Notes: a model not told the origin generated them from the sequence alone. A stretch of DNA of 62,865 nt, filler included, from Lenisia limosa (GCA_001655205.1; 8 parts of 8 records of this genome joined end to end with filler, not necessarily neighbours in it), one strand, 5' to 3'; counted from the whole stretch's first letter, positions 19,564 through 32,281 are shown. Made by a program: numbers and translations.

Positions 19564-19779
19564 NNNNNNNNNNNNNNNNNNNNNNNNNNNNNNNNNNNNN
19601 NNNNNNNGTTTCCAACACCAACCTATATTATGTATAGATATAGTATATATATTGTCAAAATCTTGAATATTTCGAAAGTATTACTATATTGACTATTTAG
19701 GCGTTTACGTTATCAAGCTCACAAAATCACACTGTACAGTCACTCATCTCGTTCGCTATCGGGCATTCAATGTCCAAGC

Positions 19780-20430
19780 TGAACCTTCCAGGGGCTGAAG
19801 ACACTATCAGTGAGTTTGGAGGGGTATTCTGACTTTGTCATCCCTGCGCTTGAGTATTTTTTTAAAATAATCGCTGATATTCTAGAATCTGCATACCAAC
19901 CAATCCCCGACTTATCCAAGTCCACCACTGTCACTAGAGTGATGCCTCTCATCCGATCTGGAAATACTGCCTTATTTCAAATTGCAATGAAGTATTTTGT
20001 ACCTCTCTTTGCTGGGCTGAGAAAGTTGAATAGTATTTATTTATTTGGCACGTCAACGTCAATCTCTGTTTGAAAACTTTGATTGGTTTGAAACGTTCTT
20101 CGCCAAAGGAGGTTGCATTGCTGTTGGCCTCAATGACCATTCAGCTGGCATCTGGTTTATTTGCTTCGTATTAACAAACAGGGATTTGCATTGCAACAGA
20201 CAGCTTCGTGGAGTTTAATTATGATTTCATGAAGTCTCTTGCATCATCATTTTCTGGTGTGAGGGATAAATTGGCCACACCTGTTGGAATATATTACTCC
20301 TGCATGGCAGATATTTGTGGTCTTGCATAGGGACTTGCTTGCTATTGTGGCAAGGTAAGGTTCTTGATGGATTGCAAGGCGAATGGGTTGAAGGCTGACG
20401 ATGATTTTGTTGAGCTCAGTGAATAAAAGA
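19780..20430 (+). CDS. Hypothetical protein fragment (helical)
   Basis: 87-aa open frame plus downstream exons bounded by short GT-AG introns; no family recognised. Confidence 0.35.
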
Positions 20431-22183: not shown

Positions 22184-22865
22184 TCAATGACCAGAAGGGT
22201 CGGCCATCCTCTCAATAGTGTATTTGTGATTTTGAATTGATAAAATGGGAACACCAGGGATCTAAATCATTACAAACTCAGTCACTTTTCTTAATCTTCT
22301 TTTTAATTCCCGATCACATGTTGCCACAATAAAGCATCTAAACTGTGATTGTTGTTTGTAAGCCCGTAAGTAACTCCTACCGCAGAAACTCTTTCAATAA
22401 GACAATCATCAGCATAAGTGCCAGGGTGACAACATGCAAGGCGTGTGAATCTTGGATCTTTTGCAACTCAAATTAGTTTTTTTAAAAAAAACCTTAAAGC
22501 AATTTTAAATTGCCTTCCTAGTTTTTCTAATTCAGCAAGAACACAGTCAGTGATACAAGGTATACCTGAAGTTACAATAAACAAGCAACATTGTGCAACA
22601 AGGCAATCCATACAACTCTGAACAATTTCAAGTTTAGATTTTAACGAAAAATTAATGAAATTAGTATCGATTAAAATGCGATAAGGTGGACCCAGAGCGG
22701 AATTATACTTAAAGAATAAGGATGAATTGGCTTGTTGACACGATTGATATAAAGAAAGTACTTATAAGAGAGTTTTAATGCCAAAATAGGTGTGCTGACT
22801 TTTTTTGATTGAATTGACAAAAATTTTTTCTGAACAAATTTTCTGGTTTTTTTGACTTTTGTCAT
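22184..22865 (-). CDS. FCF1: rRNA-processing PIN nuclease Fcf1/Utp24
   Basis: [92 protein letters not shown]. Confidence 0.95.
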
Positions 22866-23804
22866 GCTGCAACTGGAATTCTTGAGGAACAAACAAGGAA
22901 CAAAGGAACAAATTTTGGAACAAAGCTGGATATGACCCTGGTGCCGGGCTGGCGTCGAAAATGATCGGGGCACCTCAAATAGACATGGGGGGTCTATACA
23001 ACGTTTTTAGAATAATAAAGAAGCTAAGAACATAGGGAAGCCCCTTTCTGAGAACATCACTTGAACCTCTCAGTGATTAAGCCCTTCTTTCGCAGTTCCT
23101 TGTCGATAGACTCCAGATGTACATAACATCCGGGAATTCCAACGTTTTCAGAATCCCAAATCATTGCGCCGTAGAGATGCCCCTAAAGGAATTACCTTTT
23201 TCAAGATAGGTTTGCTGTTGATAATGTTCACAGAGCTTCTTTTACAAATCGAGGTTTTTCGTTTTTTCGAATTGTGACCGAAAGTGAAGCTACCCAGGTT
23301 CTGAGAGTCAATTGGGGTATCGATGAAACGTTACAGTAGTAAATGAGAAAGTGATGGAGATTACNNNNNNNNNNGACTACAGTTCTTCTAGACGTTTTGT
23401 TACCAAACTGTTATTAAATATCATAGATACATATGAGTAATGAAAACGATTCAGTGGCATTTACGAACTTTCTATTATCGATTTGAATAATAACTACAAC
23501 CATAGCAACATAAATAGTTAGTTTTTGAGGCTTCTTTCACTTCTTCCATTCTGCCTCCATCACCACCTGTTGATTTATGAGTGCCTTTTCAGAAAAAAAT
23601 CTCTGAGCAGGTTTTTTTTTGAAGATGGTTTTCACTACCTAATCGTATGNNNNNNNNNNAAAAAATTCCGCCATTGCTACTTGCGGTTTTTTGTTATTAG
23701 GTTTTTTGCTACTTGCGGTTTTTCGTTATTGGGTTTGTTCATCCGCGGGCGGGACCCTTTGGTCTAATGACTTTGGGGATGACTACATGGGGTTGTTTTG
23801 GTAG

Positions 23805-23911
23805 ACAAATCAACCAGTTCACTTACCGCCCAAGATTGGAAGACTGTACGTGTGTTTGTGTCGTCAACCTTCACAGACATGCATTCTGAGAGAGAAATCT
23901 TGCTGAAAACA
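23805..23911 (+). CDS. Isolated DUF4062-like exon (TEP1/NWD-type N-terminal domain)
   Basis: WKTVRVFVSSTFTDMHSEREILLKT bounded by AG and GT; a G run and 10-N gap follow, with no continuation seen. Confidence 0.6.
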
Positions 23912-24290
23912 GTGGGGAGGGGGGGGGGGGTNNNNNNNNNNTAGGTCGAAAGACTTGCTTATGTGTGAAGACCGCTGATGAGAAGACTCAACTATCTGTG
24001 AATTTTCATCCTTTGCATTCTCTTCCACTTAATTTCCTTTTTATTCACCTATTCACTTTATCTAGTTGTGTTTAAGCAAGGAGAAGGGACGAAGGCTGGG
24101 ACGGAAGAAGAAACGCCAAGAATCCAAGGCGGCTAGAATCCCCATGTTACCATCATTTAAAAGGTAAAACGCAAAATAACCAAATAACCCGGTAATAACC
24201 CTATTTTGTTTATTTTTATTATATATTGTGCTGGTAAAGTGCTGCTGTGCTGGTGAGTGAACAAGAGCCTTCTCAAACAAAAACGGGTTT

Positions 24291-25052
24291 ATGGGACTAT
24301 TTGGTAAAAGTTCCGAAGAAAAGAAGCAGAAGAAACTTAAGAAGAAGAAAGTCAAAGAAGAGAAGAAACAAGAGAAGAAGGAGGCCAAGGAAGAGAAACT
24401 TGGTTGTGGAAGCAGCAAGAACAAATCCTCACAGTCTGCCAATGTCAATGAGCTCCAAAAACTTGGAGAACCTGTGGTGGATGAAACAAAGCCAACTACA
24501 AAGCCTGAAGCCGAAAAGCCAAAGCAGGCAGCCAAGCCAGCCGTTACCCTCGCTGCTGTCGCTGCCGGTTTGTGTTTAATGTTGGTGAACAAAACAATCA
24601 AAATTTCCTACTACCACCGTTTTAAAAAATTCTCGTAATGTTTAAACATCTTTTCCGCTGAACTTTTCTTGAAGCAACATGGCCACGTAGGTCATTTCAA
24701 GAAAATGCCTATGGGTTTGTTGAACAATTGAGTCAGAATATTTTGTGGCTTTTGGAAAAGAAAACAAGAGCCCCGTTGAATTGCTTAAAATAAAGGGATC
24801 CCACTAATAGGAGTTCGAATCTGAATTAGCCGAGCTTAAGAAGGCGAACTGTGCTGAAGAGGAGAGGAAGGCTAAGTCGAATGCTGTGAAGAGCGACATG
24901 GGACTGAAGCTGTTCGAAGCTGTCGAGGAGAGTATGAGGAGGTGCATGTCGATGGAGGAGGGAGGAGGTAAGAGCTGCTCTGAGCGTCAAACAGAACGTA
25001 GGAAAACGGGAGCGGTTGCAGAAGTGGCCAGTGTCCTGGAAAGCCTACACTA
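24291..25052 (+). CDS. Hypothetical Lys/Glu-rich protein
   Basis: First exon MGLFGKSSEEKKQKK...LGCGSSKNKSS...; downstream exons are tentative. Confidence 0.45.
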
Positions 25053-25979
25053 ACAACTGACTGACCCCGCCCCCAGCCTGTGTAAGGGGAAAAGTGCAAC
25101 AGGAGTCAAAGCTCGACGAGGGAGTCGGAGTAGCTCTACAAGTGATCAGTGTCCTGAAAGGCCAGGTACACTATTACCTCCACTCTCTCTCTTTCTCGCA
25201 CGCAGAAGTGCCCTAGGCCCCCTCCCCGCAACCCTAAAACCCCTCCATCTCGCGATCCCCAATAACCTCCTCGGTCAAGCGAGCCCAAGACAGATAGGGA
25301 TAAAAGTTCCATATGCGGGCACCTGGAGACAAAATGAGCTAGTCCGACTCTGCTAAAAAAGCTCTATCAACAGATAGGGGCAGCATTTAGAGTGGCAACC
25401 GACCTGACCAATGGAATGGTCCGTTTGGGAAACAGATACTTCGGACCGGGACTAGACTCTATGAAAAGAGGACGAGACGGTCCATGCTATAGCGAAATGC
25501 GCAAGAGAAGAACGAAGATTAGAAAAAGGGCAGAGAACGACGTACGAATGATCCTGGAGAACTCTAAGTCGAAGGAAACCAAGCCCGAAGAACTTGGTTT
25601 CTCAGTGTAGACTGGCCATTCTGGGAAGTCCCCCCGGAAGAGAGCTCGAGCAGTGACGCCCCCCAAGAGAGACAAAAAGTTCAGCTTTTCAAAAGAAATG
25701 AACAGCATCACTCTCAGTGCCGGAATTGTAGCTGACCTGAACCCTAGTTTAAAATTGAGAGAAAAAGCCCTTAAAGACATCCCAAAGGTACTCCTAAGGA
25801 TGTCAAAGGAGATGTGGGAGGGGGCTCAGAGAGAGGACACCACCAGAGAAACGTACTGCATCGTTAGGATGAGCAGCAGCATCCAACGACTCCTAAAGCA
25901 TGCAACTGAGATGGCAAGCGAAATGAACAGAGACGAAGAAGACAAGAAGGAGGAGGAAGAGGGAACAGGCTTCCCTTAA
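25050..25979 (+). pseudogene. Degenerate intronless purine-rich ORF, possibly a decayed mobile-element ORF
   Basis: ORFs 25392-25610 and 25653-25979 share a frame, separated by one TAG; upstream frames stay open past isolated stops; no splice signals; higher GC than the flanks. Confidence 0.4.
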
Positions 25980-26865
25980 ACGCCACTACAGATGCTTTCG
26001 GCAGCAACAGGAAAACACAGGGTGAGGAAATCCCCCCTCCCTCCAAAGAACAGCGAGAAAAAGACAAAGAAAAACTAAGTAAAACACTGGTTGGTTAAGC
26101 CTAAAGTAAGCACGAATACCACTAGCATAGCAAGAGCACAGCAATAACTCAGTAGATGCATAGTGGACNNNNNNNNNNNNNNNNNNNNNNNNNNNNNNNN
26201 NNNNNNNNNNNNNNNNNNNNNNNNNNNNNNNNNGGCACGGGGGGTGCTGGTGGCGTTGGGAGAGTGGATGAAGGATGGTAGTGTACCAGACTGTTGTAGA
26301 CACTGATCACTAAGAAGACCTTCAAAATAACTATCTCCTCCACTTGGCTACACCACCTATCTACTATGGCACAAATTTATGCACTTTGTTATTTATTGAT
26401 AATGTCCTACCTACACCACTTCCGGGCTTGAGCTTGCCTACGTCGATGGATAGTGACGATAGTGACCCCCTTCTTCCTTCTTTTGTAGCTAAGGCGGGGT
26501 TGAGACGTTACAACTTTGCCCTCCTCAAATAGGAAAGACTCGTCAAGAGAGACCAGCGCTTGAGACCTTGGAGATATTTGATGTACCATACATGTTTCTT
26601 ACTGCGCGCTGTGCAGGGTTAACACCGATTTAGAAAATGGACTATTCAGAGATTTCCATGTGTTTTATTCCTATGTACTTATTTGTTTCCCTAGATATTA
26701 TTTCTCTTCAATTTTTTTTTTTTTTTATGTTAGACCCCTAGACTCCCGCTGTGTGCAGGTTGTGTGTAAACCAGGTTGTAAACACCCAACAAAACACCAG
26801 TCCTTTCCACCTCCTAGTTAATTTAGTTGAGAGACAGAGACATAGATCAGCACATCAGAATCGAA

Positions 26866-28431
26866 ATGTCTCAGATTTTGTTCAACAGCAATCTTGTTAC
26901 TCAATCAGGAGAGGGCTATTCACAACTTGATGCAGTTCATGGTTTTTTTTTTTTTTTTTTTTCATTCAGGTTTTCTCAACCTAGATTATCTTTCTGAGTT
27001 ATTTTNNNNNNNNNNNNNNNNNNNNNNNNNNNNNNNNNNNNNNNNNNNNNNNNNNNNNNNNNNNNNNNNCTGGTTTTTTTTTTTTAGATTTCTATTAATA
27101 AGGGAGTGAGTTATTTTGTTTTTCCAGGTGCTTCTCACAACCGTTTTGAGCATTCTTGCGGTGTATCATTTTTAAGTGGAGGATGGATTGAAAGTTTACG
27201 TTCAAGACAGGTGGAATTAGAAATTACCTCTAGGGAAGTACAAATTGTTAAACTTGCAGGCTTACTGCATGACATTGGACATGGTCCTTTTAGTCATGTT
27301 TTTGATGGAATGTTCATGAAAAGAAAGTATCTCCTAAACAATAATTTGAAATATTGACTGGACCCATGAAAGTGGTAGCCTGATGATGATTGACCATATG
27401 GTGGATACTAATCACATTGAAATTGATAACTGGGATTTAAAAATGATAAAGGATTTAATTGTTGGGGAACGGTATTTGAAGTTTTGTTGTTATTGTTATT
27501 TTTAAGTAAATATAAAGGATCCCAGTTTTTGTTTGACATAGTTGCAAACAGTAGAAACGGTATTGATGTGGATAAGTTTGACTACATTGCAAGGGATTCT
27601 TTGAATGTTAGTGTCCCACTTAGCTATAATAGTCAACGGTTTATTTTTTTGTTTGTTTTGATTACTGTCTTCTCAATCATAGTAAAGTTTTAAATGACAC
27701 CATATGTTTTCATAAAAGTGAAGTTTATAATATTTATCAATTATTTCACACAAGATTCTCACTATTCAAAACAGTGTTTTGTTTCGTTTTGACAGGTATA
27801 TTCACATCACGAAGGAAAAGCCATTGAATTAATGATAACTGATGCTCTTCTTGCAGCAGATTCCTTTTTGAGTATTTCAAACTCGGTATATAATGTTGAA
27901 GAGTTTAGGTCTGGGCTATTTCTTAAATAGCTTATTAACTGATAATATATTTTGGGATATTTGGAAATCTGATTGTTCTGAACTGCAAGAATCCAAAAAT
28001 ATTGTAAGACGAATTATGAATCGAGATTTCTACCTCCTAATTGGAGAAATACTAACCACACATGCTCCAGAACTCAATCATGTTTGTACTGCTTATATAA
28101 TTTGTGTTGTGCAGAAACCATCGTTTCCCATCAAAGTCATTCACTTAACCAATTGAGGCCTTGTGATATTATTGTCTATTTTCAAAAATTGAACTACGGA
28201 AAGGGTTCACTTAACCCTGTTGATAGTGTTGAATTCTTTGGGCTTTCTGACGGTTGGAAATCTGTCTCTTAATGTGAACCTTTTAATATTTCGGCATCAG
28301 AGGTCTCTTTGCTTCTTCCCAAAAAATTTGAAGAAGTATGCTTGAGAGTGTACATAAAATCAGAGGAATTAAAAGCTTCAGCTACTTTTGCCTATCAAGA
28401 GTATTTACGCTCTCTCAGGCTTACCTTTTAA
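26866..28431 (+). CDS. SAMHD1: SAMHD1-like HD-domain dNTP triphosphohydrolase, no attached SAM domain
   Basis: DAVHG, GVSYFVFPGASHNRFEHSCGV, AGLLHDIGHGPFSHVFD, WTHE, NGIDVDKFDYIARDS, FHTR, NYGKG.LNPVD, VSLLLPKKFEE. Confidence 0.92.
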
Positions 28432-28448
28432 TTGTTTGAGATGTTTCA

Positions 28449-28715
28449 TTGGGATATTGTCAATCTAGGGGTATAAATAGAATCAAGTTTAGACTGTGGC
28501 TCTTGTTCAAAACAAAAAAAAAGTCAAAAGATGATTCATTGGACCACCACTTTGATGAAGATGAAGAATGGTATGTGGTAAAAGTGTTGAAATCCCCCTG
28601 GATTCATCCAATCACTCAAACTATATTAGGGAGAATATTATGGGAGGGTAAGATGTATACCCCCGCCTGTTCAGTTCATTTATCGGCCAATTTTGAGAAT
28701 AGTTCATCCTTGTAA
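28449..28715 (+). CDS. Possible degenerate chromodomain-like ORF
   Basis: DEDEEWYVVKVLKS...GRILWEG...ANFENSSSL loosely follows the chromodomain spacing. Confidence 0.25.
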   Translation: MGYCQSRGINRIKFRLWLLFKTKKKSKDDSLDHHFDEDEEWYVVKVLKSPWIHPITQTILGRILWEGKMYTPACSVHLSANFENSSSL

Positions 28716-29704
28716 AAACGGAGGAAAAAGTGATAGCGGCGTTCCAATATTATTAAGTTCTTCTCTCAGCCCATAAAACTAGGGAGGAGAAAGGTAAACT
28801 TGGCAATGACCTTATCTAAACCGCCCCATAAAATTTCTATTAATTCCCCTTGAACTATTAATATCCTCTCGTTTAAAGCGGGTCAAAAGCAAAAGGGCTT
28901 TTTGGATTTTTCTCGCTGTTTTATTTTTTTATCAAAAGGATCGCTGAGAAGGAAAAAAAGGGGGAGGGGTTGAACAAATCAAAGGAGAATGATTTTCCTA
29001 GTGCATCTTTCGGTTTGATTGTTGAAAAACTGAATAAAAGTTGTAAGTGTAGGTTAGGATTGACAACAAAATGAAAAAGAAGGGTCATCATTAAATAAAA
29101 AAAGAGAATTTTAAAACAATAAAGTCTTATGTAAAACACATTTTCAACCCTAAACTTCCTATCCTACTTCGAGTCTTCCTTTTGTCCCAATAAACCCATT
29201 CCCCCTGACCTTGAGTCGACATAACACGAGGCTATTTATTACTCCAAACAACTCCCTCCATCGAGCCCAAAACCCGAGGAGTCCACCCAATGTTGATGCC
29301 CCACACCCTGGGTATAAAGTTAAGCCTGAGGATTTCGAATGCCAAAAACCTGGATATTTTTATTGGCTATTATTACGGAGTACTGAAGGAGCGCTACTTA
29401 ATTAGGTCTTAAGAAGACAGGGTGCGTAGCTCATTTTGCATGCTTTCTAGAGACTAAGGCCTTGGAGGGTGGGGACTGAAGGTCCCGATTGTGTCTATCC
29501 TTAAATAGGTTATGCGAAGATTTCCTCCCCAACTCTTTACCATTTATACATAATGTTGTTTTCCTGGATACAAGATTTGATTGATTATCCGCGAATAGAG
29601 ACTTGTAGAAGAGGAGAGTAGATATTGTGACAGAGGAAGAACACTTGTTGAGTTGGAAATGCGGATGTCGTTGTCACTTCTCTTTTTACTGCTTCTAAAT
29701 CCCA

Positions 29705-29910
29705 GTGTGAATGGAGATAAAGTGTTGTAAATGAAGATAAGGTGGTGTGAATGGAGATAAAGTGGTGTGAATGGAGATAAAGTGTTGTGAATGGAGAGGA
29801 GATAAAGTGGTGTGAATGGAAATATAGTGGTGTGGATGAAGATAAACTGTTGTGAATGGAGAGGAGGTGTTGTGAAGGTAGCTGAAGCGGTATAAAGTGT
29901 GAATGGAGAT
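29705..29910. repeat. Minisatellite, about 20-bp unit TGTGAATGGAGATAAAGTG(G/T), about 9 imperfect copies
   Basis: Read directly. Confidence 0.85.
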
Positions 29911-30449
29911 TGATAATATAGAATGTGGTAAGAAAATGGGATTACGAAATACAGAATAAAATCAGGTACATTATAATGAGGTTACATTAAGTAAGAGGAA
30001 GGAGTCTCAATATTCGGTTTGGATATATGAACACAACAATAGGTAAGAGCTAAAAATACATAATTTGAAATTTAAATAAAAGAGAACTAGAAAAGAAAAA
30101 AAATTCATAAAATTGAGCCAATGCGATAAAACACTGGAGCAAAATGGCATAAATGTCAGCTGGAGAAACTGTCTCAGAAAGTAAGAACCGGTTATTCTGT
30201 GACGCCAAAGCAATTCCAATAGCTCTGAGGTAGATATTGGCATTTCTCCAGGAGTTTTTGTAAACCTCACTGAGAGAATATGTATAATTTGCTAGAGAGA
30301 TTTTTAACACTCCCTCGCCAGATTAGGATTGCGGCCACATATTCAAAAGCTGGGGGGGGGGGTAAGCTGTGAAAATATGTAGTATTTCTATTTAAATATT
30401 GATTAGTATATGATATCAGGCATACTTGGGAAGACATCTTCTTCGACAA

Positions 30450-32160
30450 TTGTATTTTGTAAAAAATGACGTATGGTTCCAGTTTTGTTTTTTGTTTGCA
30501 ATGAAACGTGAACCACATCAATCTAGGTGTTTGTTATTCCTTACATATGAAGACATACCTTTCCTGAAGAGGTTTCAAAAATTACCGTTTGGTTGGTGAT
30601 TCGGGAGTTAATTTCTCCAATGATTTCCTGAAAATTATTATAACAGGGCCCACTTCATCGGTGAGAACTGTGATTGACGTTGAAGAGCCTCGCTTTCTAA
30701 TAAACGTTTGGAGTCGATGTTGAGGTTGAAGAGCCAAAGAATGGAAGAGAAAAGAGGGCTACATTATAAAATCGTACATGAAAAAGCTACCGTGACAGTT
30801 TGTTTTAATACATCTTTGGGTTTGATACATAAAAATTCTAAAAGGTTATATTAATGACAAAACTCTTACCGAGGGAAGACAAACTGTCACTGAGGATATC
30901 GGTTGGAAGCTTCCTGTCCCAAGTATCAATAGCCTTCGAAAGAAGTGCCACGTCAGGAAAAGCAATCACCTAAAAAATAACCAGAAACAATAAATAGCAA
31001 ACTTCCGAAATTTTCCTTTTGGTTATTAACTTGGTAATGTCACGGTATCTCAAGGAAGCCGAACAATGTTATTGGACTGAATAACGCTATTTAATTCTTC
31101 CGTTTTCACAATATGTTGAACTATTGATTGATACCTTTACCAGATCTGTGTTTGTCCAATCAGCAATGACAAAAAATAAGACAACCTGGGAATCCATGTG
31201 GAAAATGACACCATAGTAAATTAGAAGCACTGAATAATTGCATTTGAGTTTCTTCAAACGAAAGGTCTTATGAGCACAAATAACAAACCAAGGCATACAT
31301 CAGCGAGCTCGCACAGATCCACATTCCTTGATAACTATGCCCACTGTCGTGTAGGTAGAAAGGCAATCGGTACACTTGGAGACGCTTGGTTACCAGTCTA
31401 GCCTGTATAGTTAAACTATTCCGTAGCCATACCATGTATCTCTGAATCCTATCAATGGCTAAAGAATGCTCCGCATAACTCCAGAAATCTGGCCCACGGC
31501 AATCCAAATTGGTCGAATAAACAGAAGAAGGTGGCTTTTCTTGAAAATGTTAGTCACAGCAAATAAACATACATTTACACATTGCCAGAGTGTCGTAAAA
31601 CAGCTCTCTCAACGCTCCAACAGACGCAGAATTCATAAAGCCGGTTTGGGGTTGTAACCTGTGACAAACAGTTGCAAGCAAGCTTGCTGCTGCCTGTCCA
31701 ACCAACTCACACCTCACACTGGTTTGCATACTGATGCTTCCTTCCGGATTCACAGAGACAAAAATGAAAGGGGTAACACACTCGCCTTTGATTGCTTGAC
31801 CAATGTTATTATGTAATATAATTTTGAAAAACTGTGAAAGCAGCCGTTTCCTGGGCTTAAATGTTGCCTTGAAGGATGTTTTCCTTGTTGAGGCAGAACG
31901 GTTGAGCATGCCTTTTCTTCAACAAATTTTGGTTGCTTTGGGCAAATAAAGAATCTGGTGAGTGAATATGAACACCAAGCTCTAAATTGTAAGTTTTAAG
32001 TAACTCTCACGATCTTTCATTTGTGTTGTCAAATGCTTCCCTGTAGATTGTCAAATTTTCTAAATGAACTTACCAAGAGTTCCAATTGCATCAACTTTCT
32101 TCATTGTTTTGGAGAGTAGTGAGAGGCTTCATGCCATTCTAAAACGTAAACACTGTATTC
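30450..32160 (-). CDS. Hypothetical multi-exon protein, 5' truncated
   Basis: Several ORF-track segments bounded by GT-AG introns (e.g. EKPPSSVYSTNLDCRGPDFWSYAEHS...ARLVTKRLQVYRLPFYLHDSG); no family recognised. Confidence 0.5.
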
Positions 32161-32281
32161 AAGAAATATAAACTCCCCTACNNNNNNNNNNNNNNNNNNN
32201 NNNNNNNNNNNNNNNNNNNNNNNNNTTAATTAATTAANNNNNNNNNNNNNNNNNNNNNNNNNNNNNNNNNNNNNNNNNNNN

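Follow-up and report, generated by a model that had tools for sequence, protein, structure and literature searches.

Two unrelated genes of the breviate Lenisia limosa, encoding the PIN-domain ribosomal RNA-processing protein FCF1/Utp24 and a SAMHD1-like HD-domain deoxynucleoside triphosphate triphosphohydrolase (dNTPase), are interrupted by segments of 22–29 nt that start with GU and end with UG, and we consider it highly probable that these segments are genuine spliceosomal-type micro-introns of this organism. Both genes lie in a window of 62,865 nt (GCA_001655205.1; eight parts of eight records of the genome, joined end to end with filler), which is the whole stretch of DNA analysed and the frame of all coordinates given below. 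The segments are present in genomic DNA and are gone from mature mRNA, and splicing at UG gives the conserved protein, in the case of FCF1 as judged from homology and from the share of its sequence words held by an RNA run. Among the 14 introns of the two genes, five TG introns are well supported and a sixth is probable.

An earlier note, made from the sequence alone, had described four such segments as a class of obligatory GT-TG introns. When checked against the letters of the window, all four were found at the coordinates and with the lengths and ends claimed for them. In FCF1 (minus strand) this is 22469–22492 (24 nt, GTTTTTTTTAAAAAAACTAATTTG, ending in ACTAATTTG); in SAMHD1 (plus strand) they are 27327–27348 (22 nt, GTATCTCCTAAACAATAATTTG) and 28082–28104 (23 nt, GTTTGTACTGCTTATATAATTTG), both of which end in ATAATTTG, and 28253–28276 (24 nt, GTTGGAAATCTGTCTCTTAATGTG, ending in TTAATGTG). 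Each of them breaks the reading frame: the 22-nt and 23-nt segments cause a frameshift, and the two 24-nt segments are in frame but hold a stop codon, TGA in FCF1 22469–22492 and TAA in SAMHD1 28253–28276. All four turned out to be real, but the class is larger than four, with 27639–27667 in SAMHD1 confirmed and 22739–22761 in FCF1 probable.

Splice junctions of the SAMHD1-like gene

The SAMHD1-like gene (26866..28431, plus strand) comprises 10 exons and 9 introns. Its model aligns with homologues over 368 residues, and the motifs NRFEHS, LLHDIGHGPFSH and WTHE, which carry the metal ligands H...HD...D and the WxHE signature, are present; a genomic open reading frame (ORF) from ENA, P0270, matches Pfam PF01966. 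A search of protein representatives with exon 1 returned 150 homologues, and the protein of L. limosa itself was not among them. A protein search with an alignment of one full-length fungal SAMHD1 homologue and the window exons found P0152. This ORF and a second one, P0269, are derived from Trinity transcripts of L. limosa (EukProt EP01086), with P0270 in the same cluster. The SAMHD1 exons of the window are identical to both P0152 and P0269, and along its full length P0269 (438 aa) shares approximately 44% identity with the SAMHD1 homologues of fungi.

P0269 was placed on L001, a gap-free SPAdes contig from ENA (7688 nt) that corresponds to window 24483–32176 on the reverse strand. We found zero mismatches and nine introns, with a GT start possible at all nine. 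Five of the introns end in AG (27/28, 30, 26, 22 and 22 nt) and four in TG (22, 29, 23 and 24 nt). For each junction, every excision, whatever its terminal bases, was enumerated and listed if it reproduced the P0269-type protein. No AG-ending excision did so at 27327, 27639, 28082 or 28253, and the conserved protein is restored by excision at TG.

At the junction of 28082–28104, a single excision yields APELNH/CCAETIV, namely GT..TG; the AG at 28113–28114 is unused. This segment and 27327–27348 are missing from both P0152 and P0269. At 27327–27348 both proteins show the junction MFMKRK/NIDWTHE, for which two excisions are possible, GT..TG or TA..GA, and the first AG on the 3′ side falls within the codons of WTHE. 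The further TG intron that the earlier note had missed, 27639–27667 (29 nt, plus strand, GTTTATTTTTTTGTTTGTTTTGATTACTG, ending in GATTACTG), lies where both transcripts read SQR/LLNHS/KVLNDT, and the possible excisions are GT..TG (giving the same mRNA as GG..CT) or TT..GT. Since the transcripts keep LLNHS, the in-frame AG at 27681–27682, 15 nt downstream, is unused; the retained LLNHS aligns with LMTFS of the homologues.

The fourth TG intron, 28253–28276, is spliced in P0269 (GLSD/E/PFNIS), by GT..TG (the same mRNA as GG..GT) or by CG..TG. P0152 keeps it and ends with GWKSVS at the in-frame TAA, and therefore this segment is not always removed. Thus, three of the four segments first described are accounted for by their absence from transcript-derived ORFs, which supports TG as a productive acceptor, one of them as GT..TG solely. 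The term obligatory is too strong for 28253–28276.

The five GT-AG introns of the gene are 26942..26969 (28 nt in the window, 27 nt in L001), 27073..27102 (30 nt, with an internal AG at intron positions 14–15 that is unused), 27481..27506 (26 nt, with a single possible excision), 27774..27795 (22 nt) and 27909..27930 (22 nt), the first and the last two being placed by the enumeration of excisions and by P0269 on L001. The public ORFs P0270, P0496 and P0497 on L001 (27106–27357, 27383–27505 and 27893–28156) are exon fragments running into micro-introns. A search for contigs encoding P0269 found none.

The assembly gap inside the gene, 27006–27069, is bridged in L001 by 41 nt, which are exonic throughout, keep the frame of the transcript protein and encode its LSTPEFQRMRQLKQ part. 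In L001, the bridge of another gap, 26169–26233, consists of 83 nt of low-complexity GA/A-rich sequence, with (GA)n and an A-run. The T-run in the first SAMHD1 intron (26942–26969) is one base shorter in L001 than in the window, which accounts for its two lengths. This homopolymer and the simple repeats near 26942–26969 and 26169–26233 are probably the cause of the scaffold breaks.

The FCF1 gene, the genomic letters and the RNA run

The FCF1 gene (22184..22865, minus strand) was modelled with six exons encoding 183 aa. Its exons match human FCF1 and yeast Utp24 in PDB (E = 1e-27 and 2e-10), and the model is approximately 70% identical to its homologues. In an alignment with 108 homologues, the acidic PIN-domain residues are in place in DTNF, AELE, YADD and TCD. 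Over the junction of 22469–22492, none of the 108 homologues is gapped in a stretch of 31 residues, with which the model (KIALRVAKDPRF) is colinear. Out of 1190 stop-free in-frame deletions at this place, only three keep colinearity, namely GT..TG, its equivalent GG..TT, and TT..GA, and the sole GT-AG or GC-AG alternatives remove 6 or 13 conserved residues. Removal of 22469–22492 is required by homology, as judged from colinearity with 108 of 108 homologues.

Between exons 1 and 2 of FCF1, no in-frame GT-AG excision exists, and the short candidates are a 23-nt GT..TG and a 35-nt GC-AG. From the frame, the former, 22739..22761 (minus strand, ending in CAATCGTG), is probably a TG intron. The remaining introns of the gene are GT-AG introns on the same strand: 22566..22589 (24 nt), which if read through would give an insertion of 8 residues as compared with human FCF1, and 22343..22380 (38 nt) and 22262..22285 (24 nt), both supported by the frame and by colinearity with homologues.

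The earlier note had asked for confirmation that the genome reads TTTG rather than TTTAG at these ends. In addition to the window, the letters agree in two other assemblies. Logan contigs of the DNA run X1 over 22400–22980 and 27070–28399 showed 0 differences, 0 gaps and 0 joints, at a depth of approximately 40, and L001 is 100% identical to window 27070–32176. Each of the four segments is more than 250 nt away from the nearest assembly gap.

At the RNA level, the poly(A) run X2 holds 0.63 of the sampled words of SAMHD1, for which 0.70 would be expected if the gene were fully spliced and 0.86 if the TG introns were kept. For FCF1, this indirect measure is the sole support from RNA: 0.48 of its sampled words occur in X2, the expected shares being 0.57 with all introns spliced and 0.73 with the two TG introns kept. 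The word shares of both genes agree with full splicing, and not with retention of the TG introns.

Choice of the 3′ splice site, rival explanations and further candidates

The TG introns and the AG introns are alike in their size range, in their weak 5′ site (any of the four bases may follow the GT, and conservation beyond it is slight) and in that their length is typically not a multiple of three or they contain an in-frame stop. The TG introns begin with GTATCT, GTTTAT, GTTTGT, GTTGGA, GTTTTT and GTACTT; besides being possible at all nine SAMHD1 junctions, a GT start is also possible in the FCF1 model, and at 28082 it is the sole solution. T-rich sequence is seen in 27639–27667 and in the FCF1 intron, 28253–28276 has no tract, and introns of 22–24 nt leave no room for a classical polypyrimidine tract. 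As their last seven bases, the TG introns have TAATTTG (in three cases), TAATGTG, ATTACTG and AATCGTG. The ending TAAT[TG]TG, by which the earlier note had defined the class, is frequent but does not delimit it, as the two additional TG introns end in GATTACTG and CAATCGTG. In the piece of DNA analysed, GT-N(12-18)-TAATTTG occurs 4 times against 1.4 expected, a count reached by 3 of 100 shuffles, and three of the four matches are the introns; TAATTTG by itself is not enriched (5 against 4.4 expected). Because the motif enrichment is slight or nil, the weight of the evidence lies on the transcripts and the reading frames, and not on motif counts.

Branch-like motifs (TAAT, TTAC and CAAT), as read from the sequence, sit 3–5 nt on the 5′ side of the TG, and in the 14 introns AGs and TGs upstream of the branch-like motif go unused. 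We propose that the same U2-type machinery would remove both AG-ending and TG-ending introns, and that the terminal G would be the sole fixed 3′ base, with A or U at position -2. The site used would be the first AG or UG at least about 3 nt past a branch-like YTRAY (often TAAT) near the 3′ end, and it would be picked at the second catalytic step, not through early recognition of an AG. Such placement of the 3′ site is consistent with all 14–15 introns, the branch sites being putative and the rule having been read off the same introns. A pure length ruler was also considered and rejected: a TG at intron positions 21–22 is skipped in a 24-nt and a 29-nt intron of a gene that also has introns of 22 nt, which favours a signal close to the 3′ end.

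Several points weigh against genuine GU-UG micro-introns and the rule proposed for them. The junction evidence consists of proteins predicted from transcripts and not of transcript nucleotides. On 22400–28399, no RNA contig of X2 was placed on either gene, and there were no read-level junctions. A Lenisia transcript ORF for FCF1 was not retrieved by alignment searches, the lists being filled by conserved homologues. The sample comprises 14 introns from two genes, and the libraries of one project are the probable source of the transcripts, of the RNA run and of all three DNA assemblies. Moreover, the rule proposed for the 3′ site was derived from the introns that it explains, with putative branch points.

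Because the evidence is at the protein level, an ambiguity of one or two bases (e.g., TA..GA or TT..GA) attaches to three SAMHD1 junctions and to the FCF1 junction. The introns might thus be real but have ends shifted by 1–2 bases to some other non-canonical pair (TA..GA, TT..GA, CG..TG or TT..GT), as the proteins allow at 27327–27348, 27639–27667, 28253–28276 and the FCF1 intron. We regard this as distinctly improbable, since 28082–28104 permits GT..TG alone, a different odd pair would be needed at each intron, and with the GT start that all nine SAMHD1 junctions allow, fixing the GT phase leaves ends in AG or TG only. It seems unlikely, too, that TG plays the minor or alternative part that it has in the TG-AG tandems of humans, with most molecules using a nearby AG or retaining the segment and the Trinity ORFs forming a favourable subset. 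One isoform does keep 28253–28276, the ORFs seen represent two of the nine or more isoforms of the Trinity gene, and the TG of the FCF1 intron has an AG 2 nt further downstream. However, the conserved full-length proteins come from TG use only, both ORFs seen use TG at three junctions, and the word share of X2 agrees with removal. On the 3′ side of the TG, the nearest AG is found at a distance of 24 nt for two introns (27327–27348 and 28253–28276), of 15 nt for 27639–27667 and of 10 nt for 28082–28104.

The remaining explanations concern the DNA itself or the machinery. If the genome read TAG and an A had been dropped by sequencing or assembly, the probable sharing of libraries could have carried the error into every assembly, but three assemblies produced by different programs are identical in their letters at a depth of 35–45, introns ending in TTTAG and AATAG are intact in the same genes, and the error would be needed at five or six sites in differing contexts (TTTG, GTG and CTG). 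Because the X1 contigs and L001 match the letters of the window, a dropped A is very unlikely. Pseudogenes with frameshifts and stops, whose transcripts come from intact paralogues elsewhere, we likewise consider very unlikely; the broken frames themselves speak for them and nothing more does, whereas P0269 is identical at every residue of ten exons, each break is a GT-starting segment of 22–29 nt, the size of the ordinary introns of this genome, and run X1 shows no second DNA copy and no joint. Removal by something other than a spliceosome, either elimination of DNA as with the internal eliminated sequences of ciliates or a separate RNA-processing activity, deserves little credence. The segments are near the shortest ciliate eliminated sequences in size, and a non-AG end is unusual for a spliceosome. 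However, X1 carries the segments at the full depth of approximately 40 without joints there, and the GT start, the length range and the placement side by side with GT-AG introns in the same genes speak for a single machinery. U12-type introns also tolerate non-AG ends, and they were considered and rejected as a description of the TG introns, in which the 5′ consensus RTATCCTT and the branch consensus TCCTTAAC are absent; a partial look-alike of the U12 5′ site is present at 27327–27348 only, which starts with GTATCTCC.

Possible further introns were noticed elsewhere in the window. An exact look-up of 20 ORFs of the window and contigs yielded one further transcript protein, P0493, the counterpart of the 119-aa ORF P0492 (31550–31909, minus strand). 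P0493 stops after residue 112 (..AMCK), at a GT donor. A 33-nt GT-AG intron at this locus (GTATGTTTATTTGCTGTGACTAACATTTTCAAG, with the classic branch motif TGACTAAC) would make a TAA stop across the junction and leave unused four TGs that precede the branch motif, in keeping with the rule proposed for the 3′ site; P0493 could equally be no more than a truncated ORF. The segment 30043–30067 (plus strand, 25 nt, GTAAGAGCTAAAAATACATAATTTG), which is the fourth match to GT-N(12-18)-TAATTTG, has a strong GTAAGA start and is possibly one more TG intron, belonging to a plus-strand transcript that is not annotated. At 19810–19837 (plus strand), a 28-nt GT..TG segment (GTGAGTTTGGAGGGGTATTCTGACTTTG, ending in CTGACTTTG) would join the ATG at 19770 in frame to a 96-codon open stretch (19783–20070) without a Pfam match. 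Pfam searches of ten other open stretches of the piece gave no match and so offered no further conserved gene for the intron sample. Scans of the piece for Rfam families and for tRNAs gave no hits.

Other features are a tandem array at 29705–29866, with approximately 7.7 copies of a 20-nt unit (GTGTGAATGGAGATAAAGTG) and a higher-order period of 65 nt; a lysine-rich ORF of 115 aa at 24291–24635 (plus strand, MGLFGKSSEEKKQKK...), without a Pfam match; and a GC-richer stretch at 24800–26100 with several open frames of 70–120 codons, also without a Pfam match. Three small assembly gaps lie in the window between 23365 and 23941. That at 23365–23374 is crossed by a Logan contig, in which 7 of the 10 N are left out, and those at 23650–23659 and 23932–23941, between FCF1 and SAMHD1, have no bearing on the TG introns. 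At 23120–23517, an X1 contig with a depth of 124, about threefold the local depth of approximately 45, skips 396 nt and has 8 other letters in between, and several contigs end loosely near 23566–23649 and 23946. This pattern suggests a repeated element or a structural variant beside the three small gaps.

Comparison with known introns and significance

Ultra-short introns are also found in Paramecium and in chlorarachniophyte nucleomorphs, in which the 3′ AG is kept and U2AF1 is present. Myxozoans and dicyemids have introns of approximately 22 nt, likewise with AG kept and with U2AF1/2 present (PMC13644364), and in Stentor the 3′ AG is kept and U2AF1 is present (PMC9505925). The introns of Lenisia resemble those of Paramecium, Stentor, the nucleomorphs, myxozoans and dicyemids in their length of approximately 15–30 nt, in a 5′ site that is weak past the GT and, for some of the Lenisia introns, in having little or no polypyrimidine tract. 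They also share A residues near the 3′ end and lengths that are mostly not multiples of three, or in-frame stops. In contrast to all these lineages, Lenisia has TG as a regular ending.

In the introns of Giardia and Trichomonas, the branch point and the 3′ splice site are fused into one long, highly conserved motif that ends in AG. As in those introns, the putative branch motif of Lenisia lies a few bases from the 3′ site, but the sequence at the intron ends of Lenisia is short and degenerate, with AG or TG as its last bases. Abundant non-canonical introns occur in Oikopleura, Fritillaria, euglenids and dinoflagellates, in which mainly the 5′ dinucleotide or both ends vary, or secondary structure replaces the signals. 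In Lenisia, on the other hand, the 5′ GT is constant and only the 3′ position -2 varies, being A or T.

Human TG acceptors make up approximately 0.02% of sites, always in tandem with a nearby AG, and no constitutive case was found among them (Szafranski et al. 2007, PMC2374985). The Lenisia TG introns are like the alternative TG sites of human and Drosophila U2-type introns (PMC2374985) in their GT start, in splicing at TG and in keeping the terminal G. Unlike in the human TG-AG tandems, TG is used in 5–6 of the 14 Lenisia introns, it gives the sole productive mRNA, and the AG lies 2–24 nt downstream. No lineage in which TG ends are abundant came to light when the literature was searched for GT-TG or GU-UG introns and for introns of breviates; outside that search was the paper on the genome of Lenisia (Hamann et al. 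2016, PMC4900452), which may describe intron features. The TG ending seems to be regular in L. limosa and a rare exception elsewhere in eukaryotes.

Few signals of eukaryotic genes are as constant as the AG that closes their introns, which is read early by U2AF35 and again by the catalytic core at exon ligation. The chances seem to us about even that the situation in these two genes extends genome-wide, and perhaps to breviates generally: the A at -2 would be dispensable, UG would terminate roughly a third of all introns, if not more, and the 3′ site would be a terminal G near the branch point, with changes in or losses of the AG readers (U2AF35; contacts of Prp8, Slu7 and Prp18, or the pairing of the branch A with A(-2)). 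In that event, programs for gene finding and for spliced alignment that demand an AG would mispredict a large share of Lenisia genes, as P0270, which reads into introns, already illustrates, and this would touch many phylogenomic and metabolic studies using the Lenisia genome. Routine productive splicing at UG, if true, would be a natural experiment on which AG reading is dispensable, and Lenisia would show how the 3′ site is chosen in introns that have room for 22–24 bases only.

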